A model generated the notes under the pieces. That model had not been told where the DNA came from. It searched no databases and saw nothing but the letters and a program-made list of their open reading frames with translations. The position numbers and the translations under genes were made by a program. From Trichoplax adhaerens (Eukaryota > Animalia > Placozoa), in NCBI RefSeq assembly GCF_000150275.1, contig NW_002060944.1:4034123-4098122 (forward strand): a stretch of DNA of 64,000 bases. Direction: 5' to 3'. Shown piece after piece: positions 3,001 to 59,156 of this stretch (its first letter is position 1; each line of letters begins with the position of its first letter).

Positions 3001-5660
3001 TAACGCTCTCTTACTACACATATTAGAACAACAGATCTAGTTTTCAAACTCCAGTTCCTGATGTGTAGGGATACCAAATATTACATATTTCATATCTTAG
3101 CTAGTTCTACTAGGGACCGCTAAAATCTTTCATTTTAGTGGTCCCTGGTTTTAAGAACACTGACATCAAAGTGCAATTTTTGAAATTTTGTAATTTCTAT
3201 GTAATAGAAATTCCGATTTTGCTCGTTTGGCTCGTCATCTCAGTGGAACAGCAATCGGACTTGTGCTCTCAGGAGGTGGTGCAAGGTAATTCAATCACCA
3301 CTTTCGGTTAATAAAATTAGCAATAGTATACGGTTGTACGATTAAAGCAACTTTCTAATCATTTTTATTTATTTATATAAAGGGGACTTGCTCATTTAGG
3401 TCTTATTAAAGCAATGCGAGAATTTGGTAATTAACTGTAGCTTATTTCTTACATTTGCATTCCTTCTTATTCTTACTTAAAAATAATTTTTTTCTTCGCT
3501 ATACACGTAAGCACAAATAACGATGATTGTATTTACATATAGGAATCCCCATTGACATGGTTGGCGGAACCAGTATTGGAGCTTTAATGGGTGCATTGTA
3601 TTGCATTGATTCCGACCTAGACGACTACACAGCGAAAGCTAAACAATTTTCAGAAGTAATGTCTCCTTTATTCTATTTATCATAAATTCTTAACTAATAA
3701 ATCATATTTTATCTCTAGGAAATGTCATCGATTATACCGAAAGTCCTTGATCTAACTTATCCGGTAACCGCCACTTTTACAGGTAAGCTAAAGGCTTCAG
3801 AAATACTATTAGAAATCGATGGTATAATAACTGGAAAGTTGTAGCACAGCAAAAATAAAAATTAGCTTTTCGTTCATAATTGAAATAATATTATGCATCT
3901 AACAGGTAAAGCTTTCAATAGCGGTATTCAACGAGTCATCGGCGATGTCCAGATAGAGGTCAGAATACAGTTTTGATCATGGAAGATGATAGCATTTGTT
4001 TACTAACTTTATTGTATGTAGGACTTATGGATTCCTTACTTCACTGTAACTACCGATGTCACTGATTCTAAAATGCGGATTCATACTCAAGGTTTGACCG
4101 GAATGTGATGTTTTCTTTTCTTTACATTATCTAATGTTATGGATGTAAATAACATCAATATGATTGTAAGGTTCCTTATGGCGTTACGTCCGTTCAAGTA
4201 TGTCACTCTCTGGGTACTTACCTCCACTGTGTGATCCTACTGACGGTCACCTGCTGCTAGATGGAGGATATATCAACAATTTGCCAGGTATGAGTAAAAC
4301 TTAATCTTTTATTTACTGTTAATTTATATTTGAAATTGCTAATCGTAATAGTGATTATACACCTATTATTCATCATCATTAAAATCCCCTTTATTGAGGC
4401 ACACTCGCTAAAAAGATTTTCGAGCTGTGTAAAGGCTAGGGGTATATTTCTTGCTGGCAGTGTTCTATATGCAGTGTATATGTATATAGCAACATTATAG
4501 TTCTACAATATTACTCATTTGCTGTACTACAAATGATTTATGTCTACTTGAATTATAGCGGATATCATGAAGTCCATGGGCGCACAAACAATCATTGCTG
4601 TGGATGTTGGGGCTAATTCTGGACCAACGGACCTTGATAACTATGGAGATTATCTTTCGGGGTGGTGGCTTTTGTGGAAAAAAATTAATCCCTTTTCTGA
4701 ACCACCAAAAGTATAAACATTTGCGATTCGTTTAGAATGTTCATTTAGTGATTACTACTGTTAAAACGAAATATTGCATTTACATCATTTATCAGATACT
4801 AAATTTAGCCGAAATACAATCACGCCTAGCCTATGTATCATGCGAACGACAACTGGAAGAAATTCGAAACTGTTCTGCTTACCGATATTTAAAACCTCCA
4901 GTACAAAGGTAGGTGCATAAAATAATTCGATAGAAAATGTTTATCATGGTCTGAAATAGTTCATCTTATCGATTATTTAGATTTATAATTTCTACTCTGT
5001 TTATTTTACCAGATTTAAAACTCTACAGTTCAACAAATTTGATGAAATTGCGGTAATGAATAAAAATTAATTGAAACGATTGAAACTATATTGTATGTTC
5101 TTTCTATTTTAATGATGTATCATTTAATAATGAACTCTTTGAAATAGTACAGACATGTAAATATATTTATGTCATCGTATTGTTATCATTTATACTTTAC
5201 TCATCAGGAGGTAGGTTATGAATACGCGACAACAGTTTTTACTGGTTGGCAAGAAGGCAATCTGATGCCTAAAAGCATGCGATCTAAATATGATGATACT
5301 GATGGAACTACTACCCAGGTTGGGGAGGTAGGCTGTCAATATAACCGTCGTTATGGGCATGATTTGACTTTGATAAGTTGATTTTTGTACTACACGACAA
5401 GAAATATTACACATGACCTTTACTCTATTCGTAATAATATTGAACATTAGGAATCGTTTGGACGAACTGTTGATAGTCATAACTTTACGGATCTAGCTGA
5501 AATCGTTTCTCGCATACCACGGGTGGTACAAAATGAAGACGAAAAAGTAATAGATCATTACAAATTAAAAATAATATCGAAAGATCCAAGCCTGCCGAAA
5601 AATTTAAATAAGCTAAGCCTGAGAATGGTAATGGACTTTATTATTACTTCAACTGCATAG
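1..5660 (+). CDS. PNPLA7: Neuropathy target esterase / swiss cheese-type patatin-like phospholipase (PNPLA6/7 orthologue), 5'-partial, many exons
   Basis: Manually spliced GT-AG exons give cNMP-binding repeats ([14 protein letters not shown]; [32 protein letters not shown]). Patatin motifs: [11 protein letters not shown] (~3257-3285), GGTSIG nucleophile elbow (~3563-3580), [11 protein letters not shown] (~4255-4287), C-terminal [11 protein letters not shown] (~5484-5516). The 3' end is uncertain: read-through stop at 5660, or a spliced last exon at 7007-7045 (PIDSSPIEMDLY*). Co-orthologous to PNPLA6 and PNPLA7. Confidence 0.93.
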
Positions 5661-5884
5661 AATTACTTATTTAATTAGTAAAGAAATTTTATGATATTGT
5701 TCTACGTCAACTGGCTTGTTCCGATCTGTTATGAGCAGTTAGTACGTAGTAGTACGAGCATTTGTAGTACTATATTACTCGACGTTATTAAATCACATCA
5801 ATTTAAAAAGAATCTCAGATAAAATTAGTGACTGTAAACCAGCTTTATTTCATTATAATATGGCGAATCAATTGACTTGTCATG

Positions 5885-6585
5885 TCTATTCTGAACAGTT
5901 AGTAACGAGTGGTTTATTTAATATCGAGTAATAGTATTACTTATGTCATACTCTCTTTAGCAAGACTAAATTACTTACTAATTTGCTACTAATTTAGTCA
6001 GGATCTATTCTGAACAGTTAGTACCGAGTGATTTATTCAACGTAGAGTAGTTGCATTGCATACATCAAACCCTTTAGCAAGACTAAATTATTTACTGATT
6101 TGTTCTGATTTAAATCATAATCTATTCTGAATAGCTAGTAATGAGTGATTTTTTTAATTTAGAGTAGGAGTATTGCATATATCAAACCCTTTAGCAAGAC
6201 TAATTACTGACTAATTTGCTACTACTTTAATCATGATTTAATCTGAACAGTTAGTAACGAGTGATTTATTCAAAGTAGAATAGTAGTATTACATGTATCA
6301 AACCACTCATCGAGACTAAATGACTTACTGATTTACTACTAATTTAAATCATGATATATTCTGAATAGTTAGTAATTTATTCAATGTAGAGTAACAGTAT
6401 TGCATACGTATGTCCTACCCTTTGGCAAGATTAAATTATTTACTGATTTGCTATTAATATGAATCATGATCTATTCTGAACAGTTAACGATTTATTCAAT
6501 TTAGAGCAGTAGTGTTGCATACATATGTCTTACCCTTTAGCAAGACTAAATTAATTCGTTATTTGCTGATTTGCTTCTAATTTAA
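5885..6585. repeat. Diverged tandem repeat, ~117-bp unit x6
   Basis: Anchor TCTATTCTGAACAGTTAGTA-like recurs at ~5885, 6004, 6121, 6237, 6355 and 6470. Each unit also carries CCCTTTAGCAAGACTAAATTA-like sequence. Confidence 0.9.
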
Positions 6586-8337
6586 CTGTGATGTGCACAT
6601 ATCAATATAGAAAACGAAAACGAAAACAAAGAAGAAAAAGCTTCATAGGAGATAAATTTTCTTAAATGACTAAAAATAAATGTTTTACACGCAAATATTT
6701 TATGTTGATTAAATTATCGGGAATGTCCTAATTGAATGTTTTAGCCAATTGATTGAAAATTAAAGTAGCATTTCCAAATTTATTATTTGAATATTCATAC
6801 GGAAATTACGACTATATACCTTTATGCAATATTGTACATTGTTTATTTAGTAAAATGATGGATATGGCATGCTTTGGCTGTAGCAATCAAGCTTTAATAC
6901 TTACTTACGTGTTTGAGGTGGACTAATCTATTTCATGACGGATGATATCTGTTATGACTATCCGGCTTAAAATTGTTAATGTAATGTTACTTTTATTTTG
7001 CGCTAGCCCATTGATTCCAGCCCTATAGAGATGGATTTGTACTAATTCACTATATTCAATAACAGACCGAACTATCAGATTGTATGTCACTAATCAAATT
7101 GAAACTAACTTTTCTACACCACTTTTCTCTCTGTATTAATGCATGTCAATGCTTTGAAAGAATTTATTTTCTCGCTAGATCTCTATCGTGTCAATATAAA
7201 TAAAATAAATAAGCTACCCCTACCGATTCAGTGTCATGCTATTCTGGCTGTAGTGTAGATGTTTTTATTTGCAGTTTATCCATTCGTCCTTGCAGATAGA
7301 ACATCTAGTCGCAAGGTAGCATTGCGATCCACTGTGCAGATTCAATCGAAAGTCATTGTGCAATCCAATAATTTAATTACTTTGATTGTACAAATGAACT
7401 TTCTACAACAGCCAAGGAACCGCTAAGTTTATCGTATCGTATTAGGGTTAGGGTTAGATAACTTCAGAGACGATAAAAGTAATGATATAATAATGAGCTC
7501 ATTGCATTTTCCACTTCAATGCACTGCACCTATGTATATTATACAATATGTACTATGAGGTGTTTGCAGTAAATGATATTGTTGTAATGCGGAATGGATT
7601 AGAAGAGATTTTGATTTACAAAGTGATCCACCATATTAGCAGTACTCAGCACTAATACTATGCAACTAAAGCAAGTCTAGTGATCATACAAACGTTTTGG
7701 TCATGGTTATCGGATGGATTGTTCAAGAGATGATTTGCAAGCCAGTTGTTGAGCTTTAAGAGAGTTTTTAATTTTAATTTTATAGCATTGAAGATACAAA
7801 CAACACCAATGACATTGTCTAGAAGTCTGTTTCTAAGAAAAGGCAGCTTTTAAGTGGTCAATCCTCTTAAGATTTATTCTTATTAAACAGCAAATAGTAC
7901 AATTGATGATTAAGTACAAGAAGACGGCAATCCTAGCATAGAGTCAAGGCTATGATCATGTACCGTAAAAGTGCTCCATCATTTTTACTTCAAGTATTGG
8001 GTATTCAAGGTGGTTGAGCATAAATCAAGCAAAGGCTATGTTAATAGAATGGAATAGCAACAGAAAGGCTAAGACAGCTTATTCATATACTTCAATTAAC
8101 ATCCGATTGCAGTGTTCCATTAGTGTATTAATCTATCTTTGCCGAAAAGTAGCATTGCGAATAAACTAGCTTAAGATGTAGTTTGGTTACTAGACTATTT
8201 GGAAGGGGTTGGATAAATACCAAGTGGTTCGGTGAAGAGAGTCATCAAGGCTATTCGAATGACACTTTATCCATGCCAGGAAAGGCTATTGCTATTTATC
8301 CCTTGTCAGCATTGGCACAGGAATGATTGACTCCATA

Positions 8338-8838
8338 TTAATACTGTAAAAGAAACTCTAAGTTATATTTCTTGAGATGAGGTTCAGCAAAATGACGACC
8401 ATATTGAAATAGATCAAATCCTTGATGCCTCTTGACAGCCAAAGCAACCATGCCAATAATGGAGAATAATAACATTAATTGTAAAGCTTTGACTGTGCTC
8501 ATAAAACCTGGAATACGGTCTTCAACAGCTTTAATATAGCCATTGAAATAAGAACGACGACCATTGATATAGTAGATGCCAAGCAAGCCGCCCATGATAG
8601 GATGGAAAAAGAGCGAGCAAGTCCACAACACCACCAAAAAGATGCTAAAAAATTCCAAACTGTTTTGTTGCGCACGAGCATATCGTTCAAATTCTCCATT
8701 ACCTGTCATCTTAGGATAGTCGACCTTGAGTCGACGGCGTGCTCCACCAACACGGCCAGCAAAGGTGGTTAGTTGGTAAGCTCCAATCATGGAGACTGCG
8801 GAAGGAATGAGGATTGATTCCAAGGTGATGGCGGACAT
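8338..8838 (-). CDS. MGST2: MAPEG family microsomal glutathione S-transferase (MGST2/LTC4S-like), single coding exon, 166 aa
   Basis: The first ATG is at 8838 (MSAITLESILIPSAVS); the ORF track starts upstream at a GTG. MAPEG signature FERYARAQQNSLEFF, plus VGGARRRLKV and YYINGRRSYFNGY...DRIPGF, resemble MGST2. Four hydrophobic segments. Confidence 0.88.
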   Translation of the reverse strand: MSAITLESILIPSAVSMIGAYQLTTFAGRVGGARRRLKVDYPKMTGNGEFERYARAQQNSLEFFSIFLVVLWTCSLFFHPIMGGLLGIYYINGRRSYFNGYIKAVEDRIPGFMSTVKALQLMLLFSIIGMVALAVKRHQGFDLFQYGRHFAEPHLKKYNLEFLLQY

Positions 8839-9088
8839 GATGGATTTCTTGCTGCTTGGGCTGGGCGTTAATGTTGTTGTGTTGATGTCCACAACGTACT
8901 ACGCTAGGGTGACGTTAGTCGAACGTTTCCTATGCGACCGACGCCAGTGACGTTGAGTGCACAGATCTCGGGTACCGGTACGGTACCCAAACGGTATGCG
9001 CAGTAGGACAGCTCGTCGACTTCCACTCGTACAGTATGACGTTTGCAAACGGTGACGCCGTACAGCCATCCCGGACGGACCGATTTCT

Positions 9089-9098
9089 TGCTGAGTCA
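9089..9098 (-). promoter_or_regulatory. Antioxidant response element (CNC/Nrf2-small Maf site) TGACTCAGCA
   Basis: The plus strand reads TGCTGAGTCA, about 250 bp upstream of the MAPEG ATG, in a locally GC-rich promoter-like stretch. Confidence 0.55.
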
Positions 9099-11552
9099 GT
9101 ATAGTATCAATGGTATGCAACGTCACAAGCGATTTTGAGCGTGTTACGAGGGATGGATGGATGACCGGACTCTCAATGTCGACCAAAGCCCTATGCAGGA
9201 TTACCACTGTCATGGAGACTGGAGCTCGCATAGGGTTAGATAGTGGACAACTTTCCATCAATAAAAAGAAAGCCACCATCATGATACCTTGATCGATGGA
9301 TAATATACTCTCTCTCTCTGTGGTCAATCATGGAGTATGATGTAGAGTACAGTAGAAGAAATCCAGTAATAACGTGTCAAGAATATTCTTTTGCTCAGTG
9401 CACAACGATTGATTGTACTGTACTGTATACAGTAAGGGCCAGTTTCTGCCAGTCATCGACTACAAGCTCCAGCACCGCACTGCTATATGCAAGGGAAAAT
9501 TCGTTTGGCTCACGCTTGTGCAGTGAGTGATACTGTACTTTCAACCACTATATCATTGAAACAAAAAAAATTGGACTAATTTGCCCTAGGGGAAGGAAAT
9601 AGAGATTCATTTTTGCCCATTTGATCGATGATATTATCAATTCAACAACAACATTGAGCGAGGACCAACACAAGTCTAGTATAGAGTATGAATTTTCCTC
9701 TATCATCACTGTCATGATACGCAAAGCATTATCTGTGACTGGTATTCATCTAGTATTATAGCTCAAAATTACTGTACTGTAGTCCGTCGGTGGAGATAGT
9801 TCGATGGTCGATTTTCGACAGCTTTTTAGTGCTGCCATAGACCTCAAAGAAGGCATTTTTTAACGTCTATAATACTCTACTGTCTTAGAAGTTCCTGATA
9901 TGGCTAAGGTTATGGTTAAGATTTCATTTGATGCAGTAAATAAAGTCACTTCGGTAGTGCTGCTATGGCCTGCTAAAGTAAACTCTGATTAAGGCAAGGC
10001 AAGGCGCAAGTGGTGTTCTCCTTGGTGACAGAATGTCCGTCCATCTGAGTGATGAAACGATGGCCTGTTCCGTTGATCCTTCCGAGTTCCGGCTGTAGCT
10101 TGCAAGATCGTGATCAACAGGCAGCAATATCGCGCCTAGGCATTAAACTGGAGACAAGTTGTCAAGTGGAACTTTGGTGGCTATCATGGCATGGATATTA
10201 AGAATTAAAGCAAGGTAAAGCCATCATATTCTCTCTATACTATCAATCTACCATCGAGGAGGGAAAAAGGAACACAAGATAAAATTATTTTAAAATTGAA
10301 TTCCTTTTTTGACAATGTATGGTAGTCATATTAATTGAATTGGTAGATAGTTTACAGTGTCATGTTGATCCCCCCAAAATGGATCCGATTTCAGCTGTTG
10401 TGCATTCTAATTAATTCAAATCGGCCGAGTTCAACCAAGTCTAGACATGGATAGATTCGTAGTCGATATGGCTTAGCTCATGATAGACTGTAGGCATAGT
10501 ATCTACTAGAATAAGCACTACAAGAAGACTTAAAAATGACTCTTCTATGATGGCATTACTTACACTAGACATGGTAAAGATACAAGTAAAATAATCCATC
10601 GATTCATCAAACGATCAAATGCCCTAATATGAATGTTAGTTGGATTCTTGAATCAAGTAGACTTTGGGAGAAATTGCTACATCAAGTAGGAGATAATACT
10701 AATGGAATGAGATCATGCTTTATACACCTTTATTATGAACTTTTCCTCCTTAAATTAGAACAGTTGCAGTCTATCGTTGTTAGTCCAATTTGTCATCAAG
10801 TATTAGAAGTTTTTTGGCAGTTGATCATCCACATCTGGTTAAAATGATTGCATAACATCATGGCTCATCAATGCAATTTTCAAGTAGAATTACAGTTGGA
10901 CTAACCTACTCTTGCACTAGGCATTACACGTTTATTTTAATATCACTAATAGATACTTTTGGTCACTATTTTTCATGGCATGTTGTGACAATTTGAGAAA
11001 CAAAGGATTCATTTTATACTATTGACTATCGACTAGGACAATATTAACTAGATAACGGTATGACAACCATATACGTAGTTAGAAATATACATAAAACACT
11101 TCTCATGATCAGCACATCAAAACTTTCATACTGTATTTAAAATATAAACAGAGAACCGATTGCAAAGCCTAAATTGAACAAGTCCATTTCCCCTTAATAT
11201 TAACATTCTTATTCTTTATCTTGATGATGCAAAATCACAAACTACACTGCAAGAATTATAGTACTTGTTATTCACTTTATAACACTACATCAAGGCTTGA
11301 TTGATCCACAAGCCGAATAAATTGAGAATTATTTACTACGCCTACATGGAGTATTGATATTTCCCTAGTAGGCATGATCCAATCTTGATGCAATACCATT
11401 TTAACACCTGTATATGCTCTTCATTATCTTAATGATACAAACGATACTTTCATAATTACTTGTTACTAACCGATTCCAATTTGTATTTTGAATCATGTAT
11501 TAGATTTGAATAATCGTCTAAAATACCATACAGCGATGCACTGTAAATAGAA

Positions 11553-13829
<2,277 letters not shown>

Positions 13830-14699: not shown

Positions 14700-15190
14700 A
14701 GCATCATTTATTGTGCTAGTTTTGTTATTAAAGTTTATTAAAAATTCTATCTGCTCTCCAGGGATGTTTTAGGCTCAAGACCCAGTTTTGATAACTTTAT
14801 TACTGTGGTATCCCTTCTAATTTTAAAATTTTATTAACTGACGAGTTACTTTACTACGGATACTGTATCAGAAATACCATATCCTACATTACAAAGATAT
14901 ATAGATGAAAATATCTAAGAATGATTGAACTGAATAATTCCTCCCCGATTTAAGAATTTAATTTAAGGAATACAGAAGACCAAGTGCATTTGTTATAGTA
15001 CTAATTCCACTGTTATCTCTCAGTAATGCAGGAATCTTGACAGTATCAAACAATTAAAGATTGATAGTATTTCTAGTAATCTATGACAACATATGCAAAG
15101 TATCCGAATACAGCATACGCTCAAGATTTTTCACGTTACTGTCATGGTCAGTTTTTCGCTTTTTGATGACACGAAATACGCTACTGTAAA
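14700..15190 (-). pseudogene. Highly decayed paralogue of the N-terminal half of the HNH ORF at 17472-18677
   Basis: Minus-strand translation gives colinear fragments MLYSDTL, ISDTVSVVK* and ESR*NF, against MLYFPKL, TSDTVATVKD and ESRVDF in the intact ORF. DNA TTTACTACGGATACTGTATCAGAA (~14850) matches TTTACTGTCGCTACTGTATCAGAA (18331). Many stops and frameshifts; boundaries approximate. Confidence 0.5.
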
Positions 15191-15819
15191 TTTACTTTTA
15201 TTTACCTACTTTTCTTAAAATTAGTAAAATAAAATATTGCAATTGTCTTATTGAAGATAAATAATCTGGTAGGTAATAAAATAATTTTGATTAAACTTAA
15301 GCTAATTCGTAGATGCGATGTTTCATAAAAAGATAACCCTAAATTAGGCAAGAGTGCATAAACAAGAAGGGATCGCGCTAACAAATTACTGAATACGACT
15401 AGCACATATGAACGCATCTAACTTATTATACTCGTACTTAATTATTAGCCTTAAGACAACCGCTTTGCTGACTGTTTACCTTATTCTTCCTAGACTAAAT
15501 TCATCTTTGGAATCGCCACAGCTGGCGATTTACGCGTAAGTAACCGGACTCTTCTAACACATCTAATTGTATTGTATTTATTTCTTACGCTGCTCGTTTA
15601 CAACTTTTAGATCCATAGATTTATATCGCTACCTGTCAATGTCTATGTTTGAAGACAATATTACTCAGCTACAATCGAGTCCAAGGTGCCTACTTTACGT
15701 ACAGCAGTTGTAATACCAGCCATATATATAGTATATGAAATCATTTAATCTGTATAAGATATCTACTAGTATGTTGTAAATGCTAACCACCCAGACATTG
15801 CTAAATACAGTCAAACCCT

Positions 15820-16740
15820 AATTCTACTGTTAAAATACGATATGTTACTCGACTATACTGTAGTAATTCTAATCGCCAATTCTATTGTAAATTACTGTTA
15901 GAATGAAGTGATTTGTTCCCTCCTCAACTTATTATAAAAAACACTTACTGAATTATGAAATATAACAGTGGCAGTTCAGAACAATATGAAAATTAAAAGA
16001 TTTAAAATCCACTTTGGATTAGAAGGTTTCTATTACTCTACGTTAAAAATTAATCACTTTCTAAGTTAGCAACATTAGTAGTAGTAGTATTATATTGGTA
16101 CTCTGTGGTGTGATTGAATATTGCAAATTACTTTTAGCATCAACTTTGTGTTTCCTTTTTAATCTTAACATAAAAATCACATGCTGAATTATGGGGTATA
16201 TCAGCAGCAATTATGAAGGAGAATACGAGATTTAAATCTATTTTAGGTTATAAGATTTGTATTAACTTCGTATAAGAACCAATCACTTTCCATGTTAACA
16301 ACATTAGTAGTAGTATATCGGCATTTTACTGCGTAATTAAATATTGTAAATTACTTTTAGTATGAAGTTGTTCATTCTTTCTTAACTTACGATAAAACAC
16401 TTACTGAATCACAAAGCATATCAGCGACAGTTATGAAGTAAAGTATGAAAACGGAAAGATATAAAATCTACTTTAGACTTGAGGGTTTTTATTTACTTCC
16501 TATTACAATTAACTACTTCCTTGATTAGCAATATTAGTAGTAATATTGTATTGACATTCTCCTGTGTGATTGAATATTATAAATTACTTTTAGCATGAGT
16601 CATTCATTTCCTTCTTAATTTATTATAAGAAACACTTCCTGACTTATAGAGTACATCAGCAGTAGTTATGAAGTAGAATATAAAAAATGGAAAGTAAAAT
16701 TTAAAACCTACTTTGAACTAGAAGATTTCTTTTATTTAGA
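15820..16740 (+). repeat. Four tandem ~230-bp decayed copies of MORN5 exon 1 plus its flanks
   Basis: Anchor AAATTACTTTTAG-like at ~15889, 16125, 16348 and 16580, and AAGTTACTTTTAG at ~20373. Each copy has an exon-1 look-alike: MKYNSGSSEQYEN* (~15955), MGYISSNYEGEYEI* (16191), one at ~16411 lacking ATG, and IEYISSSYEVEYK (~16646). The true exon reads MEYIGSSYEGEHKNGR. Confidence 0.85.
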
Positions 16741-16769
16741 CACTTGGTAGTTGTTTTAGTCAGGTCTTA

Positions 16770-17333
16770 AAATTTAAGTATTGGTTGATCTTTAAGACCT
16801 ACAACATTATTTAAAAGTGCTACAAAAAGATAACTATAATCAGTGTCCTTATGCATCATCCATCATTCATTGTACTTGCTTCCACTGGAAAGAAGCTGTC
16901 AGATATATCTTTGATAACTCTTTTTCTACAGTATTCGTCGATAAGTTTGAAATTTCATCTGATGACTCAGGATACTTTCGAACGAGTTCACCTAGATGAT
17001 GGCGGAATGTCTTAAAATCTTAAACTTTCTCGTTATCTGCAGTGTAATTTTGAGCAACTTTCTCTCTAAAGGCTATAGCTTCTCTATATATCTACCTTTC
17101 CCAATGTGGTCTCTATCCAGTCACGAATAGTATCGAAGGAAGATTCTTAATTTAACTCTTTTTTCCATCCACTTTTTTTCCATTTTCTTATTGCATAACT
17201 CACACAAAAACATCAGATTGCGAGTATCATTTTGTACTTGCACTGCGAATTCTTTTGTGGCTTAGACAAATATTTTGCTTATTTTATTACTTGGATTAGT
17301 ATGTTTATCTCTTCTAAATGTTAGATTTAAAAC
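16770..17333 (-). pseudogene. Truncated, frameshifted tandem duplicate of the 3' third and 3' flank of the HNH ORF
   Basis: 16770-17333 aligns by eye to 17335-17905. It retains QVQNDTRNLMFLCELCN (intact copy QVQNDTRNLMFMCSLCN) and the shared junction TATCTCTTCTAAATGTTAGATTTAAAACGT. It lacks the DH motif and has indels. Confidence 0.88.
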
Positions 17334-17471
17334 GTTATAATTTAAACACTTGTTGATCTTCGAGATCCACAATACGATATTATTTAAAAGTGCCAAAAAA
17401 GTTACTAGAATACAGAATTCTTATGCAGCATCATTCATTGTACTGCTTTTTGCCGGAAGGAAACTGTGAGA

Positions 17472-18677
17472 CTAAAGGTCCAGCTCTGATATCTTTTGCG
17501 TTATGGTATCCATCGCTAATTTTGAAATTTCTTTAACTGACTCAGGATACTTTTGAATGACTTCACCGAGATAATTACGGAATTTCTTAAAATCTTGTAC
17601 TTTCTCTTCATCTATAGTGTAGGTTCGAACAACTTTCTCTCTGAAGACTACAGCTTCTTCGAGAATCAACCTTCTCGATACATCCGCCTTTCCCAATGTA
17701 GTCTCTATTAGGTCTTTAATAGGATAAAAAGAAGATAATCCAACTAACTCGTCCTTCCATCCACCTTTTTTCCTTCTCTCATTACATAAACTGCACATAA
17801 ACATCAAATTGCGGGTATCATTTTGTACTTGCACTGCGAGAATTTTTGTGGCAAAGATAAATACTTTGCTTTTATTATCTCTTCTAAATGTTAGATTTAA
17901 AACGTAAAACTTATTTTTAGACAGTAAAAACTCATCATAGTCCTTCTTTTCTTGATCGCCACAAACTGATCTTAGTTTATTTAATAAATAAACAGAAGCC
18001 AATAGTTTCTCATGAATTTGTGTTTTAGGTAATACATGATCTACTTCTGGATCAGAGTTATGATCTTCACCTTTGATACTTTGAGAAAAAGGGCAAGAAA
18101 AGTTCTTTAAATCAACAGGCCTTCCTATTTTATCACTATATACTTTTTCCAACGCTTTTTTGGTAGCCTTGTTATAATTACTAACATATTTAGTGTGGAT
18201 ATCTCTACTGCATATATGATAGAAAGGTACAAAATCAACCCTTGATTCCTTAGCATTAGCAGCAGTAAATTTATTATTGCCGCAAATTACACCTTGAAAC
18301 TCGTAATTTAATACAGAATCCAAAAAGTCCTTTACTGTCGCTACTGTATCAGAAGTATCCGAATTGCACCTTGCATTATGAATATAATCGTAATCGAGTT
18401 TCTTTATTTTAGAACCATCTTCATTTTTAATTTCTATAATGGTGGCACGAAGTACGCTTTTAAGAATACATTTTCGTTTACCTTTTTCTTCTTTGAATAG
18501 CTTAGGAAAGTAGAGCATCGCGCAAGCCTTGATACAGGCTCTAAAGTTTCTGTAATTAGAATAATCAATATTTGTTACAGTGCCCGCCTTAACACTTGCT
18601 ATTAAAGACTTATTTCGATCCTTTTTTGCATCATATCTCGCAAAGATACTAACATTGGATGACATTTTATAAGCCAT
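17472..18677 (-). CDS. Uncharacterised intronless 401-aa protein with a split HNH (beta-beta-alpha-metal) nuclease motif
   Basis: Long uninterrupted ORF in AT-rich DNA. EVDHVLPK (His codon 18036-18038) is followed 71 residues later by NDTRNLMFMCSLCNERRK (CSLCN at 17781-17795), matching the HNH pattern xDHxxP...NxxNLxxxCxxCNxxK. Basic, Lys-rich. Confidence 0.75.
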   Translation of the reverse strand: MAYKMSSNVSIFARYDAKKDRNKSLIASVKAGTVTNIDYSNYRNFRACIKACAMLYFPKLFKEEKGKRKCILKSVLRATIIEIKNEDGSKIKKLDYDYIHNARCNSDTSDTVATVKDFLDSVLNYEFQGVICGNNKFTAANAKESRVDFVPFYHICSRDIHTKYVSNYNKATKKALEKVYSDKIGRPVDLKNFSCPFSQSIKGEDHNSDPEVDHVLPKTQIHEKLLASVYLLNKLRSVCGDQEKKDYDEFLLSKNKFYVLNLTFRRDNKSKVFIFATKILAVQVQNDTRNLMFMCSLCNERRKKGGWKDELVGLSSFYPIKDLIETTLGKADVSRRLILEEAVVFREKVVRTYTIDEEKVQDFKKFRNYLGEVIQKYPESVKEISKLAMDTITQKISELDL

Positions 18678-20039
18678 GTTATAAGATGCTTCAATATTTA
18701 TTTATTAAATTCGAATTTCTGTACAGTATGTAAGCTGGAAAAGCTCAACGAATAAAATACTATTGGCCGTTGCATTCACGGAAAACCACAGTTTCGCAAT
18801 GAGAGTATCAAATTTATGAAAGTAAATAAGCCAAATAGTTAAAAAGTTAAGACATCGGTCTTTAAAGGATTATTTTAGATGTCCATGTATTATAAATGAA
18901 TTAAACTGGCCAGGATGCAGGTATTCCGAAAGCAACTTGAATATGATGGCATAATAAAAATGTAAATTTTGTTAATCAACGATGAAATCAAGTTTAATTA
19001 AGAATTTAACTCTATAATGAGCGCTTGGCTATGATGTTAGTTTACTTAAAATGATTACAATTAGCAGTGCATCAAGCATAACATAAGAAAGCTTTCTTTA
19101 GTAATAAAATACTCGTTCAAGAATTGAATTAAAAGATTTATGAGATAGTTTTTTGAAAACTAGTTCATCTTTTGGATCGCTATATTAAAGAAACAATACG
19201 AGTAAATAAAGTGCACGTTACATTATATAGTCATATCCCTTTCTAAAATTTTAATAACTTAAAGAAATGACTGTAGTGTTATCTATAAATGCTATTATTA
19301 GCATATATCTAGGTTAATATTTTCACTCTTTGTTTACCAGTCCTTTTGAATACATTCATCTCTATCGTATATCTATGTCTCCATTACTCCTGCAATTACT
19401 AAAGAGACAGGTTTACAATTATAATTTACGGGAAAAAATAGGTCATACACGCTCTTCATGTAACAAGAGAAAATACACTTGCAAACTTTCTGAAATTATC
19501 TACCTTAACCAAAGTAAACACCCGTGATTGGACTGCTAATATCGAGCAATAACAACTAATTACGCTTGATCACAGATAACTGCCGGCTAAATAGTGAATT
19601 TGCTATCATATAATTAACAGAATATGCAAAATGGAGTCTTGTAGAATTAGAAAAACAGCTTAATATCAATTCTACTGTATATATACACTTCTAAAATATA
19701 TCAATAAGAATTCTTTTGACAGAATCCTACTATATACTATGATGTTATGCTATCAAGAATAGATTACATAAGGTACTCACATCCCATAGCGGAATAATTA
19801 TCGCTTCCTTAGGTATTATATGAGTTTATGTTCAGCTTGGATGATAAATAGATAGATAATCGGATTATCGAATCGTCAGAGCATGGACGAAACGAATGAT
19901 TCTAGTAAGTTTACTTCTAATGCAAATAATTTATAAATTCACAGCTCTATAACGGAGTATTTCCTCTACTTTATTCCACAGCGCAGAAACTAGGTAAATA
20001 TAGTTATAACTTTTCTATAGCGAAAGCTCTGGTAACGCT

Positions 20040-20053
20040 GTTACCATGGAGAC
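20040..20053. promoter_or_regulatory. RFX X-box GTTACCATGGAGAC
   Basis: The reverse complement GTCTCCATGGTAAC fits the X-box consensus GTHNYYATRRNAAC. It lies ~380 bp upstream of the MORN5 ATG, with an extra half-site GGTAAC at 20031-20036. Confidence 0.65.
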
Positions 20054-20435
20054 GAACTTGTATATTATACACAATATAGTATAGAGGGGCATATTATTAT
20101 CAAAGAGCTGTACAGTACGTACACTCGAGAAGGTCAAGAGTATAACATAATCATATAGCCTTTAGCGAGCTACTAATTGTTCGCATTTACATATTTTAGC
20201 TTTTATTAAAGTATCGATCAAGCGCTTCACTAACTAGGCAATAGACGTCGCCGCATCTACCCTGTTAAAATCAGCGGGCGGAATTAGAATATGAGATAGA
20301 ATCATTTTATAAATTAACATCATCAGTATTAGTAGTACGATATTAGTGTTATACTGTGGGATTGAATTCTATAAGTTACTTTTAGTATAAAATTATTAAC
20401 TCTCTTTTTAATTATAATAATAAACTTACCAAAGT

Positions 20436-22920
<2,485 letters not shown>

Positions 22921-24196
22921 AATTATAGTTTTAATCGTATGCAATAACTTATAAAATGATCTCGAAGGTATACGAGAAAGGTATACTTACAATATGACCT
23001 ACCGATTCTATAACGACAAGCTTCTAAAAGCCTGTATTTACTTTGTACATTGTACAAGTAATGAGTCTACTATATATTATATACTGTACTTTGGTGCGAA
23101 GATATTTTAGTAATTATTTTCCAATTTAAATTATCGATTTTATACGATGTTGACATGCTCCTGGCACATATTCATGGATGTATTCGCACATGAAAATAAA
23201 CGAATTGTGAGAGTAATAATAAAAAATTCGACAGCAACTCGTAACATTTCCTTATAAAATTTTAAGGATATTTTAGAGATTTGCCCACGCTGCAACAATT
23301 TAAAATCGATCAACTTTGATTATACAATTTTCTTATATGTTAACGCTACAAAGTTGGTAATAGTGAAAAATAAAAGATCTCTTTATATCAAATTGACTAA
23401 TGCATTTTATAAACAACTTTAAATAATAGTAGTTGTATAATTAATATATTACGGGTATAAGTTGATTTTCCATATGCATTTAGCTGCAGTAATTGTATAA
23501 AATACTATTTGCAGCTTTTTTAGGCATGATAAAATACAATACTGTACTGGAAATCGTAATTTCCAAACTGCTCTTCAGATATTGAAACTAAACCTTTCAG
23601 AGCTTCAGAGCTTAGCTTTATGAACGAGAAAAGCCGCCTTGATTCTTATTGAAAGCCTTCAGAAGAGTTTGATCTCATTACTAACATCATGCAGTACCAC
23701 ATAGCAACGTAAAATTTACTAGCTTGTTAGTTGCCCAGTTAGAGGAGCATTTGCCTTGCGAGGTCCTCATAATTGATGAAGGAAAGTTTACATAATCGTG
23801 AACGATTTTAAAAACAATTATGGATGGATTTTCTAACGTATAAATAACTTGAGGCGTACCGATTCCATTCCATTCAGAAATTTTTCTTGACTTAATCAAC
23901 GCTCAACACGCTAATCTGACTATCCCTTCTTACTACAGATTACAGTTAAAACTACAGACTACTAGAAATTTTAACTCAATTATCGGGAATAAAAATAATA
24001 TTGCATCCATCGTTTAATTAGAGATACAGAAAAATGCACCTTAGGGCCTTAGCCAAGTAAAATGTATCATTGCTCGGGAATCTTAAGATAAAGTATACGA
24101 TACAATTCGAAATATTTTACCACCCAAAGTTAAAACTTTTTACAACATTCCTTTATTGGTAAAGTTGGTATCAATCTAATAACAATTTACAGTTGT

Positions 24197-35960: not shown

Positions 35961-36890
35961 TCAATTATAACGGCATCTACAAATTTTATGAATAGCTTGC
36001 TTATATCCTATACGAAAATCCTTACTTCGATATGCGTATAAGACTGGATTAATAGCAGAGTTACAGAATACTAACGCTGAAGATGTAAAGTAGACGCCAT
36101 CAGGTACTATTACTTTAGATATTGGTATAATAATAAATGCTAATAAACTCCAAGGCGCAATACAGATTAGAAATGCAATAAATATGATAAACATGGTTGA
36201 AGTGACGTTAGCCTTATCCATAGCTGTAGGTGATTGAAAACCATCACAAATCATATCTCTCCGTTTCCTTGAAAGAAAGAGAAAAATAAACAAGTAGCAG
36301 TAAGTAATAACAATTAGAGGTATGGCGAAATCGATAACAGCATCATAGATGCCCCTAGCTATTCCACTTATGCTATTTCCATTCCAATCGGGAACGCAGC
36401 CTTTCTCAATGTCTACATAAACACTTTTACCCCATCCAAGAAACGACACAGCCGGTACTAAAATACATGTTGCCCAAATAATACCAATGCAATAGTATGC
36501 ATGTCTTGACTGTAATTTTTTAGATTTTACAACCACAAGATAGCGTATTATAGCTATCCACATTAAATTGTGAATAGAGCCGATAAAGCCCATACCTCCA
36601 ATTTGTACATGAATAGCACAACCAATTTCACCATAAAATTGTCTATCAGCTATGATATTGACTAAATAGAGTGGTAATTGAAATAATCCATTAATAATGT
36701 CGAGAATAGCTAAATTCATGATAAGATAGTTTGTTACAGTCTGGGTTGCATTACGTCCATATTGAGAAATAACAATAATAACTAAGCTATTGCCAATAAC
36801 AGCGGCTATAGCGATAATAATAAAAATAGTAGATTTAATAACAATAACTTCCAATGGTGTATGATGAGTTTCGTTAGTTCTATTATCCAT
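35961..36890 (-). CDS. Intronless class A (rhodopsin-family) GPCR, copy 1, intact 309 aa
   Basis: Seven hydrophobic segments. GN in TM1, LAxxD in TM2, IRY at the DRY position, GWG...GCVPDW in ECL2, NPVLY in TM7, helix-8 FR; N-terminal sequons. Confidence 0.93.
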   Translation of the reverse strand: MDNRTNETHHTPLEVIVIKSTIFIIIAIAAVIGNSLVIIVISQYGRNATQTVTNYLIMNLAILDIINGLFQLPLYLVNIIADRQFYGEIGCAIHVQIGGMGFIGSIHNLMWIAIIRYLVVVKSKKLQSRHAYYCIGIIWATCILVPAVSFLGWGKSVYVDIEKGCVPDWNGNSISGIARGIYDAVIDFAIPLIVITYCYLFIFLFLSRKRRDMICDGFQSPTAMDKANVTSTMFIIFIAFLICIAPWSLLAFIIIPISKVIVPDGVYFTSSALVFCNSAINPVLYAYRSKDFRIGYKQAIHKICRCRYN

Positions 36891-40850: not shown

Positions 40851-41780
40851 TTAATTATTACAGCATTTAAATATTTTATGAATAGCTAGCTTATATCCTA
40901 TACGAAAATCCTTACTTCGATATGCGTATAAGACTGGATTAATAGCAGAGTTACATAGTACTAACGCTAACGATGTAAAGTAGACGCCATCAGATACTGC
41001 CACTTGAGCTACAGGCATGATAATAAATGCTAATAAACTCCAAGGCGCAATACAGATTAGAAATGCAATAAATATGATAAACATGGTTGAAGTGACGTTA
41101 GCCTTATCCATAGCTGTAGGTGATTGAAAACCATCACAAATCATATCTCTCCGTTTCCTTGAAAGAAAGAGAAAAATAAACAAGTAGCAGTAAGTAATAA
41201 CAATTAAAGGTATGGCGAAATCGATAACGGCATCATAGATGCCCCTAGCTATTCCACTTATGCTATTTCCATTCCAATCGGGAACGCAGCCTTTCTCAAT
41301 GTCTACATAAACACTTTTACCCCATCCAAGAAAGGACACAGCCGGTACTAAAATACATGTTGCCCAAATAATACCAATGCAATAGTATGCATGTCTTGAC
41401 TGTAATTTTTTAGATTTTACAACCACAAGATAGCGTATTATAGCTATCCACATTAAATTGTGAATAGAGCCGATAAAGCCCATACCTCCAATTTGTACAT
41501 GAATAGCACAACCAATTTCACCATAAAATTGTCTATCAGCTATGATATTGACTAAATAGAGTGGTAATTGAAATAATCCATTAATAATGTCGAGAATAGC
41601 TAAATTCATGATAAGATAATTTGTTACAGTCTGGGCTGCATTACGTCCATATTGAGAAATAACAATAATAACTAAGCTATTGCCAATAACAGCGGCTATA
41701 GCGATAATAATAAAAATAGTAGATTTAATAACAATAACTTCCAATGGTGTATGATGAGTTTCGTTAGTTCTATTATCCAT
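40851..41780 (-). CDS. Intronless class A GPCR, copy 2, intact 309 aa
   Basis: Same motifs as copy 1. It differs by one residue in the N-terminal ~250 aa and by several in ECL3/TM7 and the tail. Confidence 0.93.
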   Translation of the reverse strand: MDNRTNETHHTPLEVIVIKSTIFIIIAIAAVIGNSLVIIVISQYGRNAAQTVTNYLIMNLAILDIINGLFQLPLYLVNIIADRQFYGEIGCAIHVQIGGMGFIGSIHNLMWIAIIRYLVVVKSKKLQSRHAYYCIGIIWATCILVPAVSFLGWGKSVYVDIEKGCVPDWNGNSISGIARGIYDAVIDFAIPLIVITYCYLFIFLFLSRKRRDMICDGFQSPTAMDKANVTSTMFIIFIAFLICIAPWSLLAFIIMPVAQVAVSDGVYFTSLALVLCNSAINPVLYAYRSKDFRIGYKLAIHKIFKCCNN

Positions 41781-53913: not shown

Positions 53914-54833
53914 TCAATAACAACCACATCTACAGATTTTATCAATAGCCTGCTTATATCCTGCACGAAAGTTCTTATTTCGATATCCATATAAGAATAG
54001 GCTTATGATATAGTTACAGAACACTAACATTGAAGATGTAAAGTAGACTCCATCAGGTACTCTCACTTTAGCTACTGGTATAATGATAAATACTAGTAGA
54101 CTCCACGACAAATAACACATTAGAAATGTAATAAATACAATAAACATTGTCAAAGTGACTTTAGACTTATTCATAGCAGTTGGTGATTGAAAGGAATACC
54201 GAATCATTCGTTGTTGTTTCTTTTCCAGAAAGATAAATATAAATGAATAACAGTAAATTATAGTAAGTAAAGGCGTAGCATAATGGAAAATAGCAGAATA
54301 GATGCCTCTAGCTATTCCAATTATGCCAGTCTTATCCAGCTAGGAATACAACCTTTTTCAATCTCTACATAAACAAATTTACCCCATCCTAGAAACGATA
54401 TAGCCGGTGTCAAAGTACATGTTGCCCAAATAATACCAATAAAATAGTATGCATGTCTTGGTTTCAACTTTTTAGATTTTACAACGACAAGATAGCGTAC
54501 TACAGCTATCCACATTAAATTATGAATAGTACCAATAAAAATTATACCTCCAAGATAAGCATGAAAGGCGCAACCAACTTGATCATAATACTGCCTATCG
54601 GCTATAATATTAACTATATAGAGAGGTAAACAGACTAGACCATTTATAATGCCGAAAATAGATAAATTCATTACTAGATAGTTTGTTACAGTTTGAGTAG
54701 AATTATATTGAAAAATGACTATAACAACCAAGGTATTACCAATAACAGCAGCAATAGCAGCAATAGTAAAAATAATAGATTTGATAGCAATAATTTCTAA
54801 CGGGGTATGAGTTACATTGGTTGTATTATCCAT
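53914..54833 (-). pseudogene. GPCR copy 5, one frameshift near 54335
   Basis: ORF 54321-54833 leaves frame after CIPSW (TGGATAAG, where paralogues have TGGGAT). The rest is open in the shifted frame to 53914. TM2 Asp and NPxxY are also altered (LSIFG, SLFLY). Confidence 0.85.
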
Positions 54834-57669: not shown

Positions 57670-59156
57670 CTAAATACATTTATATTGCAACCGCATGTAC
57701 AAAATTTTATGAATAGCTTGTTTATATCCTGTACGAAAATTCTCACTTCGACATCCATATAAGAAAGGATTTATAACAGAATTACAGAACAGCAATACTA
57801 TAGATGTAAAGTAGATGCTATCAGGCACGATCACTTTAGCTACTGGTATAATAATAAATACTAATAGACACCATGACGAATAACACATTAGAAATGCAAT
57901 AAATACGATAAAGATGGTCGAATTTACGTTAGACTTATTCATAGCAGTTAGTGAGTGATAAGTATTGCGAATCATCCGTTGTCGTTTCCTTCTAAGGAAG
58001 CAAAAAATAAATAAATAGCAATAAATTATAGTATTAAAAAATATAACATAATTGATAGTAGCAGAATAGATGCCCCTAGTTATTCCACTTATGCCATCTC
58101 TATCCCAACTAGGAAGACAAGCTTTCTCAATCTCTACATAAACACTCTTACTCCATCCTAGAAGCGATACAGCTGGTCCTAAGACACGTGCTGTAAATAA
58201 TACCAATGCAATAGTATGCATGTCTGGATTGCAATTTTTTAGACTTGACAACGATAAGGTAGCTGTAATGTAACTAGTATTGTGATTGTAGACTATTAGC
58301 CATGTTTAGTATAATGTACGGTAGATATTTATCCTAAGAGATATTTGGTAGCTATACCTATAGACTGTAGTGGCATAGACTCTATGCTAGAGTACAGATG
58401 ACTATATACAGTAAGGTGTTGAGTTACTAATAAGGTTATAGGTAAAAATAGAACTGTAAATCATATATTAGGATATGGTTAATTCATTGTACTTTGGCTG
58501 GTGTGAATAATGTCTACGTAAGTACTGTAGTCGTATCGATATTAGATTAATGATGGTCCGTAGTAGAATAGTCTTACTAAGAATAATTTAACTATGTGTA
58601 ATATAAGGTAAAAGGTTACCATGCGGATTGTAGCTGCGAATGCTACGAAAAGTATAAAAGCATGCAACTTTAGATTATTCTGTTAGTTCATTCTAGAAGT
58701 CTTTAGTAGTAGTATTCGGCTAGAGTGGAGCTGTGTGTAGTTAATCTTTGTATAAGATTCAATAAAGCCCTTATTTTTCTAAAATTTGGAATCTCGTGAT
58801 TGGTATATATCACAGTAGCGCACTATAGCTATCCGCATTAAATTATGAATAGAGCCTACAAATAATACACCTCCAATATACGAATGAATAGAACAACCAA
58901 TATCATCATAATACTGCCTATCGGCTATGATATTCAATATATAGGGAGGTAAGTTGACTAGTTCGTTCATGATGTCAAAAACAGCTAAATTGATAATTAG
59001 ATAATTTGTTATAGTTTGAGTTGAACGATTTTGAGAAATAACGATAATGACTAAGACATTGCCAATAACAGCGGCAATAGCGATAACAATAAAAGTAGCA
59101 GACTTGATAGCAACAATTTCCAATGGTGTACGACTCGCATTGGTTATATTATCCAT
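57670..59156 (-). pseudogene. GPCR copy 6, pseudogene interrupted by a solo LTR, plus a frameshift in TM4
   Basis: 5' part MDNITN...IAIVRY (59156-58815) and 3' part LIVVKSKKLQSRHAYYC... (from 58258) rejoin exactly when the insert and one GTAGC are removed. A separate frameshift lies near 58185. Confidence 0.92.
58264..58814 (+). mobile_element. Solo LTR, 551 bp
   Basis: Starts TGTAATGTA and ends TATATCACA (TG...CA, imperfect inverted termini). Perfect 5-bp target-site duplication GTAGC at 58259-58263 and 58815-58819. TATAAAAG at ~58653 is followed by AATAAA at 58761. Absent from the five paralogous genes. Confidence 0.85.

Follow-up and report, generated by a model that had tools for sequence, protein, structure and literature searches.

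A stretch of 64,000 nt from the genome of the placozoan Trichoplax adhaerens (NCBI RefSeq assembly GCF_000150275.1, contig NW_002060944.1, positions 4,034,123 to 4,098,122; hereafter the window, with positions counted from its first letter) carries on its minus strand, at 17472–18677, an intronless gene for a 401-residue protein that we assign to the HNH nuclease superfamily. The gene is transcribed, it is present in the sequenced strain in two strongly divergent forms, A (the form in the window) and B, and its relatives beyond Trichoplax come from bacteria and marine metagenomes. The account that we favour, and hold to be fairly probable as a whole, is that a bacterial HNH gene with a split motif was captured by the animal, where it is transcribed, exists as two divergent alleles and plays a part in genetic conflict. 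Its product is most likely a domesticated conflict or defence nuclease.

The open reading frame (ORF) starts with ATG and is intact through 401 codons to its stop. It is the longest in the window, the next being two genes of 309 aa for G-protein-coupled receptors (GPCRs). At the GC content of the window (32%), composition predicts a stop at ∼7.6% of random codons, and hence 401 open codons with a probability of ∼1e-14 per start, so the run is too improbable to have arisen by chance. Coding introns are absent: 1,095 nt of a contig from an RNA run are colinear with 17455–18549 (all sequencing runs were used as Logan contigs, which give one depth figure per contig and no readable strand, ends or expression level). 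The gene has a GC content of 33% (28% at third codon positions), matching that of the window. A preliminary description of the window, made from its letters, had already reported a 401-codon intronless ORF with the strings EVDHVLPK and NDTRNLMFMCSLCNERRK 71 residues apart, and both points hold. The strings occupy residues 211–218 and 286–303, with a gap of 67 residues between them; counted from H214 to N286, 71 residues intervene.

That description also took the two strings for an HNH pattern, and comparison within the family and with other HNH domains bears this out. Residues invariant across five family sequences include C195, P196, H206, H214, D287, R289, N290, L291, C295, C298, N299, K304, G306 and W307. 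In the first half of the motif (D213-H214), H214 is invariant in all five sequences covering the region, and the pair lines up with the DH found in 24 bona fide HNH domains; in the second half, N290 and C295-x-x-C298-N299 are invariant and align in register with N..C..CN/H. These comparison domains, taken from Margulisbacteria genomes, were aligned with the family profile after removal of its residues 225–281. With the insertion excised in this way, hhalign gave a probability of 93.6 and a score of 36.65 over 49 columns, as against a mean of 9.75 (standard deviation 2.4, maximum 21.6) for 200 column shuffles and 11.7 for the reversed profile. In this alignment C195 coincided with the leading Cys of the CxxC, the two DH pairs lay opposite each other, and the string N..C..CN..K met its exact counterpart. 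Aligned separately, the two halves still fell in register, with P = 8e-5 for the first and 1e-5 for the second.

Standard domain models catch part of this signal. The Pfam HNH model (PF01844) aligns to residues 285–303 at 12.7 bits (gathering cut-off 21.4, E = 0.15), an alignment confined to the second half of the motif; it matches four of the five members that include the HNH region, with a best E of 0.0015. The insertion of ∼67 residues breaks this model, which is 47 positions long. PADLOC returned weak PtuB matches (E 0.004–0.009) over residues 287–321, which are the HNH core, and PHROGs gave weak HNH matches only. Among the matches listed by a language-model search, neighbours at scores of 0.83–0.87 were named HNH or had a Pfam HNH match in part of their members, which we take as a lead only. 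Neither NCBIfam nor the PDB searched by sequence, with the single protein or with the family profile, gave a match. For the N-terminal domain no relative was detected by Pfam or by ESM Atlas, where a search with the first 185 residues returned no usable match. Membership of the HNH superfamily, as a divergent subfamily with a split motif, is thus well supported at the level of sequence. Of the nuclease reading in the preliminary description, the HNH assignment by sequence stands; nuclease activity itself is predicted from it.

In protein databases the sister of the gene product is TRIADDRAFT_62631, also of Trichoplax adhaerens, which is form B. The family is extremely rare. An exhaustive HMMER search of 1.84 billion representative sequences yielded seven matches. 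Besides TRIADDRAFT_62631 these were a 371-aa protein from an ENA metagenome, with 40% identity, two matches to pieces of a single gene on a GOS scaffold, an incomplete protein from a Nitrospinales metagenome-assembled genome (MAG), and a pair of short fragments; one fragment falls in a cluster with a Margulisbacteria MAG protein. Searches seeded with words in a set of 5.8 billion proteins found nothing beyond the known relatives, and further protein searches with the family profile and with a bacterial member added none. No relatives were found among IMG/VR viral contigs, nor by tblastn among PLSDB plasmids and INPHARED phages, and JGI metagenomes returned only the known GOS contig. A motif-pattern scan of a collection of species-representative genomes gave the Margulisbacteria MAG locus as its sole confirmed match. 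In the two protein sets of 5.8 billion and 1.84 billion no homologue was found in eukaryotes other than Trichoplax (other placozoan genera are not covered by them), and we found no paper naming any accession of the gene or of the MAG.

Judged by their sequences there are, then, about five relatives of the same architecture, all of them marine metagenomic or bacterial, and the Trichoplax protein is 30–40% identical to the bacterial ones. Family members are ∼360–400 aa long and consist of an N-terminal domain, the two HNH halves separated by the insertion of ∼67 residues, and a helical tail; every one of these parts recurs in the relatives whose sequences are long enough to show them. These results change two points of the preliminary description, which had called the gene an orphan and its insertion and N-terminal domain lineage-specific: there is a sister form in the same genome, an orthologue in Trichoplax sp. 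H2 and a set of bacterial relatives, and both the insertion and the N-terminal domain are conserved in the latter.

Within the phylum Margulisbacteria the gene is present in 1 of 146 genomes. It lies there on a densely coding 22-kb MAG contig (scaffold_233, L009), with family homology at 8395–9468. The contig encodes a RepA C-terminal domain, NikA, a MobA/VirD2 relaxase, ParA, ParB and DnaB, and this gene set marks it as a mobilisable plasmid or similar element. It also encodes a YhcG PD-(D/E)XK nuclease, a Schlafen/AlbA_2 protein, a non-specific endonuclease and an IS200-type transposase. The neighbours of the family gene are plasmid maintenance genes, and two adjacent small ORFs belong to no family. 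The deposited MAG protein is short at its N-terminus (282 aa, from a TTG start at 8623), with homology from 8395; the frame is open from 8395, and ATG, GTG and TTG starts are all absent there. On the same contig, a cytochrome P450 (15984–17333) and a secreted-type non-specific DNA/RNA endonuclease (15013–15867) are unusual cargo for a bacterial genome as small as ∼2.2 Mb.

Since no other eukaryote has the gene, and its relatives are bacterial with one on a plasmid, the simplest account of its origin is that a placozoan ancestor received it from a mobile element of marine bacteria. Acquisition from a bacterium or mobile element, as the preliminary description had supposed, is supported to this extent, and the direction of transfer is read from distribution alone: the family numbers about six sequences, has no root and allows no rooted tree. 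Trichoplax harbours a rickettsial symbiont and one from the Margulisbacteria, the latter in Trichoplax sp. H2 (PMC6784892). We considered this Margulisbacteria symbiont as the donor and found no support for it: with the gene in so few genomes of the phylum, and no link shown between the MAG and the symbiont, it is a guess.

Form B was found as a second full copy of the gene on the 9.3-kb scaffold C1212 (L008). Positions 1–1369 of that scaffold match window positions 23792–22413 with 99.1% identity, 5546–7237 match 19186–17505 with 85%, and 7719–9294 match 17509–15941 with 98.5%. The A and B coding sequences (CDSs) are about 81–82% identical and the encoded proteins 63–65%, as against 95.3% for the 509 nt upstream of the ATG and 98.5–99% outside the divergent block. 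In successive 60-nt windows identity is ∼97% for 19141–18724, 70–93% from the start codon through the CDS, and ∼98.5% beyond a repeat insertion. The assembly contains no third copy, so that a single locus accounts for the gene in all 105.6 Mb. At ∼19190–19261, contigs of two DNA runs join a ∼70-nt stretch to sequences absent from both the window and C1212; this stretch, which coincides with the upstream end of the alignable part of the allele-B scaffold, is likely to be a short repeat with copies at other loci.

The repeat insertion (C1212 7238–7718) is 481 nt long and flanked by a duplicated ATACC. It is dispersed in the genome, with at least 40 copies at 93–98% identity, which suggests a recently active non-autonomous transposon. 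It replaces the last 11 codons of B with six new ones and supplies the B stop codon; beyond the repeat come 33 nt of CDS that match allele A exactly. An insertion with a target-site duplication argues against a chimeric join and places B contiguous with an A-type 3′ end.

Sequencing depth leads to the same conclusion. Contigs of DNA run X4 that are unique to A have depths of 16.5–20.2, compared with 36–37 for long contigs of the flanks, and bins covering part of the conserved core, to which both forms can be aligned, have a summed depth of 36–40. Run X1 has the same depth pattern. In both runs, which come from different studies, the junction between B and the repeat can be recognised by a loose end at 17505. 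On the most economical reading A and B appear to be two alleles of one locus in the clonal laboratory strain. This fits the report of Kamm et al. 2018 (PMC6057997) that the lineage derives from an interbreeding event and carries substantial allelic variation. Strain H2 carries the A type. The abrupt 3′ boundary of the block at the repeat shows that recombination or conversion tracts have also shaped it.

The differences between the alleles lie preferentially at sites that change the protein. By the Nei-Gojobori method (NG86), synonymous divergence (dS) is 0.116 and nonsynonymous divergence (dN) 0.240, an omega (dN/dS) of 2.07 (Fisher's exact test, p = 5e-4). A pairwise maximum-likelihood codon model (GY94, F3x4) gave an omega of 3.1 with kappa 2.4, and a likelihood-ratio statistic of 19.4 against omega = 1 (p = 1e-5). 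Codon positions 1, 2 and 3 differ 78, 85 and 47 times; codons for the same amino acid differ in 15 of 251 cases and four-fold sites in 3 of 87. Silent divergence is no higher than that of flanking non-coding DNA, which upstream amounts to 4.7%. Because dN exceeds dS, neutral decay cannot explain the pattern.

This divergence surrounds a conserved centre. Among 50-codon windows, omega is below 1 only at codons 251–300, the HNH core; all 26 family-invariant residues are present in both alleles, and 67 of 110 outgroup-conserved columns are unchanged in both. Derived states are found on both sides, A alone matching the outgroups at 36 sites and B alone at 22. The codon comparison marks this as adaptive diversification of the protein around a preserved, putatively catalytic core, and such rapid adaptive divergence fits the earlier suggestion that the gene may be selfish or domesticated for defence. 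Two other sources of the A/B difference were considered and rejected: gene conversion from a downstream pseudogene, which covers the last third of the gene only, while divergence is as high in the first two thirds; and decay of allele B alone, since both alleles carry derived changes. Differences on the coding strand are A/G in 73 cases and C/T in 26, almost three to one, which may only reflect a purine-rich strand encoding many Lys, Glu and Arg residues.

Evidence for transcription comes from RNA runs X17 and X13, metatranscriptomes of a second organism that is probably Trichoplax sp. H2, to judge from the library type and from the study design of PMC6784892. Contigs from both runs cover the ORF and are 99–99.7% identical to it. 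Those of X17 cover 17455–18891, with gaps on either side, and those of X13 cover 16390–19953. X13 contains real RNA, because it holds the splice junction between exon 1 of the neighbouring MORN-repeat gene (20436–20482) and 21822. An orthologous protein, 395/401 identical to that of allele A, is annotated in H2 (TrispH2_004123).

The surroundings of the gene record earlier duplications. A decayed copy downstream retains ∼75% nucleotide identity and has several stops and frame changes. Beyond this fragment lie three units with 73–76% similarity to the MORN gene's promoter and first exon (20300–20485); by this likeness they are the remains of repeated duplication of a head-to-head cassette. Together the decayed copy and the MORN-like units indicate that the locus went through birth-and-death turnover.

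Structure prediction adds little to the HNH assignment. The AlphaFold2 model of the full-length protein has a predicted local distance difference test score (pLDDT) of 59.7, with values below 50 at residues 192–211 and 294–324, and a model of the domain has 43.6. The most confident stretch of the full-length model is the insertion (219–285), modelled as two helices, a beta-hairpin and a short helix, with pLDDT 81–86 over most of its length. Foldseek against PDB and BFVD, together with a VIA wide search, recovered only a generic helical hairpin at residues 355–401 and no meaningful fold match. The fold check proposed in the preliminary description, run with AlphaFold and Foldseek, thus ended, for want of alignment depth, with pLDDT below 50 over both motifs and no useful fold matches.

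Several points weigh against the account given so far. All family members score below the Pfam HNH gathering cut-off, serine takes the place of the second Cys in the first CxxC (C-P-x-S), and the excision points for the hhalign comparison were picked after the motifs had been seen. Both structural models fall below pLDDT 50 over the motif regions, so that convergence of the two halves is not visible in them, and the fold searches found nothing. With about six sequences there is no tree against which the direction of transfer could be set. Scaffold C1212 contains 4,081 N (a gap of ∼4 kb) and is tied to its far flank by scaffolding, which leaves some room for a more complex arrangement. The divergent block stops precisely where the transposon is inserted, so that recombination boundaries contribute to it and not selection alone. 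Allele B, whose original C-terminus is gone, could be in the course of being lost. On the RNA side, X13 also covers intergenic DNA, and carry-over of DNA into that run is possible.

These points feed other explanations. The protein might be an HNH-like zinc-finger scaffold lacking nuclease activity, a DNA- or protein-binding factor whose partners change. The sub-threshold Pfam score, with an alignment of the C-terminal half only, the degenerate first CxxC, an insertion of 67 residues where a hairpin loop is expected and the lack of a confident fold would all suit such a factor. We think it rather unlikely, given that H214, N290 and N299 do not vary between bacteria and Trichoplax, nor between the two fast-evolving alleles, that the N-to-N spacing of 9 is canonical, and that the one 50-codon window with omega below 1 is at codons 251–300. 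A selfish element, either a free-standing homing-type endonuclease or a toxin-like driver with A and B as competing haplotypes, would be at home with an origin in a bacterial mobile element, local duplication and decay, an omega above 1 and a restriction to one lineage; it is an unlikely reading of a gene at a single locus, outside any intron or intein, with both haplotypes occupied, no empty target allele and no partner 'antidote' ORF in the block. That A and B are instead paralogues, in tandem or at separate loci, with C1212 a repeat-joined artefact of assembly, we regard as quite unlikely. The short scaffold with its 4,081 N, the high-copy 481-nt repeat at the block boundary and the history of tandem duplication would favour it, but the ATACC duplication followed by the A-type last 33 nt of the CDS indicates a genuine insertion, A-specific contigs have half the depth of the flanks in two runs, the flanks differ by 1–1.5%, and no third copy exists.

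The two remaining alternatives deny the gene a role in the animal. It could be a relic of transfer, functionless and decaying neutrally, as the decayed fragment next door, the transposon in the 3′ end of B and the tiny size of the family might suggest; two intact ORFs of 400–401 codons in AT-rich DNA, an omega significantly above 1, the retention of 26/26 invariant residues in both alleles and the RNA-run contigs over the ORF make this very improbable. Or it could be bacterial contamination or misassembled symbiont sequence, an idea prompted by the Margulisbacteria and rickettsial symbionts of Trichoplax (PMC6784892) and by the one relative in a Margulisbacteria MAG. The gene is, however, physically integrated, lying inside a 9.7-Mb scaffold of the assembly between a kinase gene and the spliced MORN gene, with colinear contigs from independent runs. 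Contigs of several studies span the junctions, which disposes of the concern, raised in the preliminary description, that reads might reveal a contaminant or a misassembly; the protein is 30–40% identical to bacterial ones, and its orthologue is annotated in the independent H2 assembly. Scaffold contiguity, gene setting and matching GC content thus exclude contamination, to which we would give practically no chance.

We therefore keep to a captured bacterial gene with a role in conflict, and its working may be pictured as follows. A gene from a bacterial mobile element would have entered a placozoan ancestor and then undergone tandem duplication and partial decay. In the encoded enzyme H214, as general base, would activate water, N299 would hold the divalent catalytic metal and N290 would brace the hairpin, while a structural zinc would have C195, H206, C295 and C298 as its ligands. 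Choice of the nucleic-acid target, or contact with an antagonist, may fall to the variable N-terminal and surface parts. Such an enzyme would act in genetic conflict, as a defence against foreign or symbiont DNA or, less likely, in a selfish manner.

A more far-reaching version, in which a nuclease captured from a plasmid is now a hypervariable conflict gene of placozoans whose old, divergent alleles are kept by diversifying or balancing selection, is conceivable, if doubtful. If true, it would mean immune-type polymorphism in one of the simplest animals, with a role in innate defence, in control of intracellular bacteria or in self/non-self discrimination. Placozoans live with intracellular bacteria, and we know of no adaptive or hypervariable immune genes described in them. 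An expressed gene of putative bacterial derivation, with alleles 35% different at the protein level and an omega of 2–3 amid neighbouring DNA that is 98.5–99% identical, is a candidate for conflict or defence in an early animal. The case also illustrates that a strongly divergent allele can sit unnoticed on a small 'orphan' scaffold of the 2008 assembly.

The features of the locus are collected in Table 1. Of the 1.76-kb spacer between the gene and the MORN gene (18678–20435), the part beyond 18891 is shared head-to-head with the latter.

Table 1. Features at and around the putative HNH nuclease gene, in window coordinates
Feature	Position	Strand	Remark
Intronless ORF, 401 codons + stop, allele A	17472..18677	-	H2 orthologue TrispH2_004123, 395/401 identical
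Conserved N-terminal domain, ∼residues 8–125, motif NIDY..Y..R...K.CA..YFP.LF	18303..18656	-	Common to bacterial/metagenomic relatives
First half of HNH motif, residues 193–218: C195, H206, D213-H214; H214 candidate general base	18024..18101	-	
Family-conserved insertion of ∼67 residues (219–285) between HNH halves	17823..18023	-	
Second half of HNH motif, residues 286–307: R289-N290, C295-x-x-C298-N299, K304, G305-G306-W307	17757..17822	-	
C-terminal region, residues 308–401, predicted helical at low confidence	17475..17756	-	AlphaFold2 model
Divergent block between alleles A and B	17505..19186	.	Compared with scaffold C1212
ATACC site, duplicated around the 481-nt repeat in allele B	17505..17509	.	
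Decayed tandem copy of last ∼145 codons + 3′ flank	16800..17340	-	
Three tandem ∼230-nt units like MORN promoter/exon 1	15883..16696	+	
Likely 5′ untranslated region; RNA-run contig coverage continues upstream	18678..18891	-	
MORN-repeat gene exon 1, divergent orientation	20436..20482	+	Spliced to 21822 in RNA run X13

The distance to the closest animal gene is <2 kb on one flank and ∼3.6 kb on the opposite flank. The neighbours of the nuclease gene are a split protein-kinase gene (exons 13270–13829), the MORN-repeat gene, a MAPEG gene and rhodopsin-type GPCR genes, so that the earlier placement 'among housekeeping genes' is roughly right. The two intronless 309-aa rhodopsin-type GPCR ORFs (35961–36890 and 40851–41780, minus strand) lie 4.9 kb apart and are 95% identical, with nearly all differences within the last 60 residues. 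Further GPCR-like ORFs at 54321–54833 and 57670–58251, downstream of the pair, suggest a local receptor gene cluster in the window.

Among known systems the nearest is the HNH superfamily itself (PF01844; McrA-like), with which the protein shares a D/E-H motif and an Asn followed 9 residues on by CxxC-N/H and then by a basic residue; C..CN..KG is also the ending of many of the bacterial HNH domains compared. By analogy the product would work like a stand-alone nuclease of the McrA type. It differs in its conserved insertion of ∼67 residues between the DH and Asn strands, where ∼10–25 are usual, in its C-P-x-S in place of the first CxxC, in its sub-threshold Pfam score and in its unique N-terminal domain and helical tail, and nearly all of its relatives are missing from public databases.

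In the Septu system the HNH nuclease PtuB is encoded beside PtuA, an ABC-type ATPase. The resemblance to PtuB consists of a weak core match over ∼35 residues (287–321) and of the occurrence of a stand-alone nuclease on a bacterial mobile element; a PtuA-like ATPase was found neither beside the bacterial plasmid gene nor beside the Trichoplax gene. Small HNH enzymes of mobile-element origin with a variable DNA-recognition part are also known as homing endonucleases, of the I-HmuI type or as free-standing phage homing endonuclease genes. The Trichoplax gene differs from these in occupying a single chromosomal locus with no spread in copy number; it lies neither in an intron or intein nor beside a target with an empty, cleavable allele, both haplotypes being occupied. 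It also departs from polymorphic toxins: Pfam detects no secretion, trafficking or repeat domains, and the HNH region is internal and does not form a C-terminal tip. The protein is thus classed neither with PtuB nor with homing endonucleases or polymorphic-toxin tips.

A precedent for the proposed capture is given by Zhang et al. 2012 (PMC3482391), who described transfers of bacterial toxin and nuclease domains, for example Tox-REase-8, to Trichoplax and arthropods. As in those transfers, a conflict-type nuclease of bacterial kind resides in the Trichoplax nuclear genome, presumably derived from associated bacteria. The present gene differs in encoding an HNH rather than a restriction-endonuclease fold, and a whole protein with no secretion or trafficking domain rather than a toxin tip. 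Set beside all of these systems, the family would represent an undescribed split-motif subfamily of HNH proteins with a new N-terminal domain.

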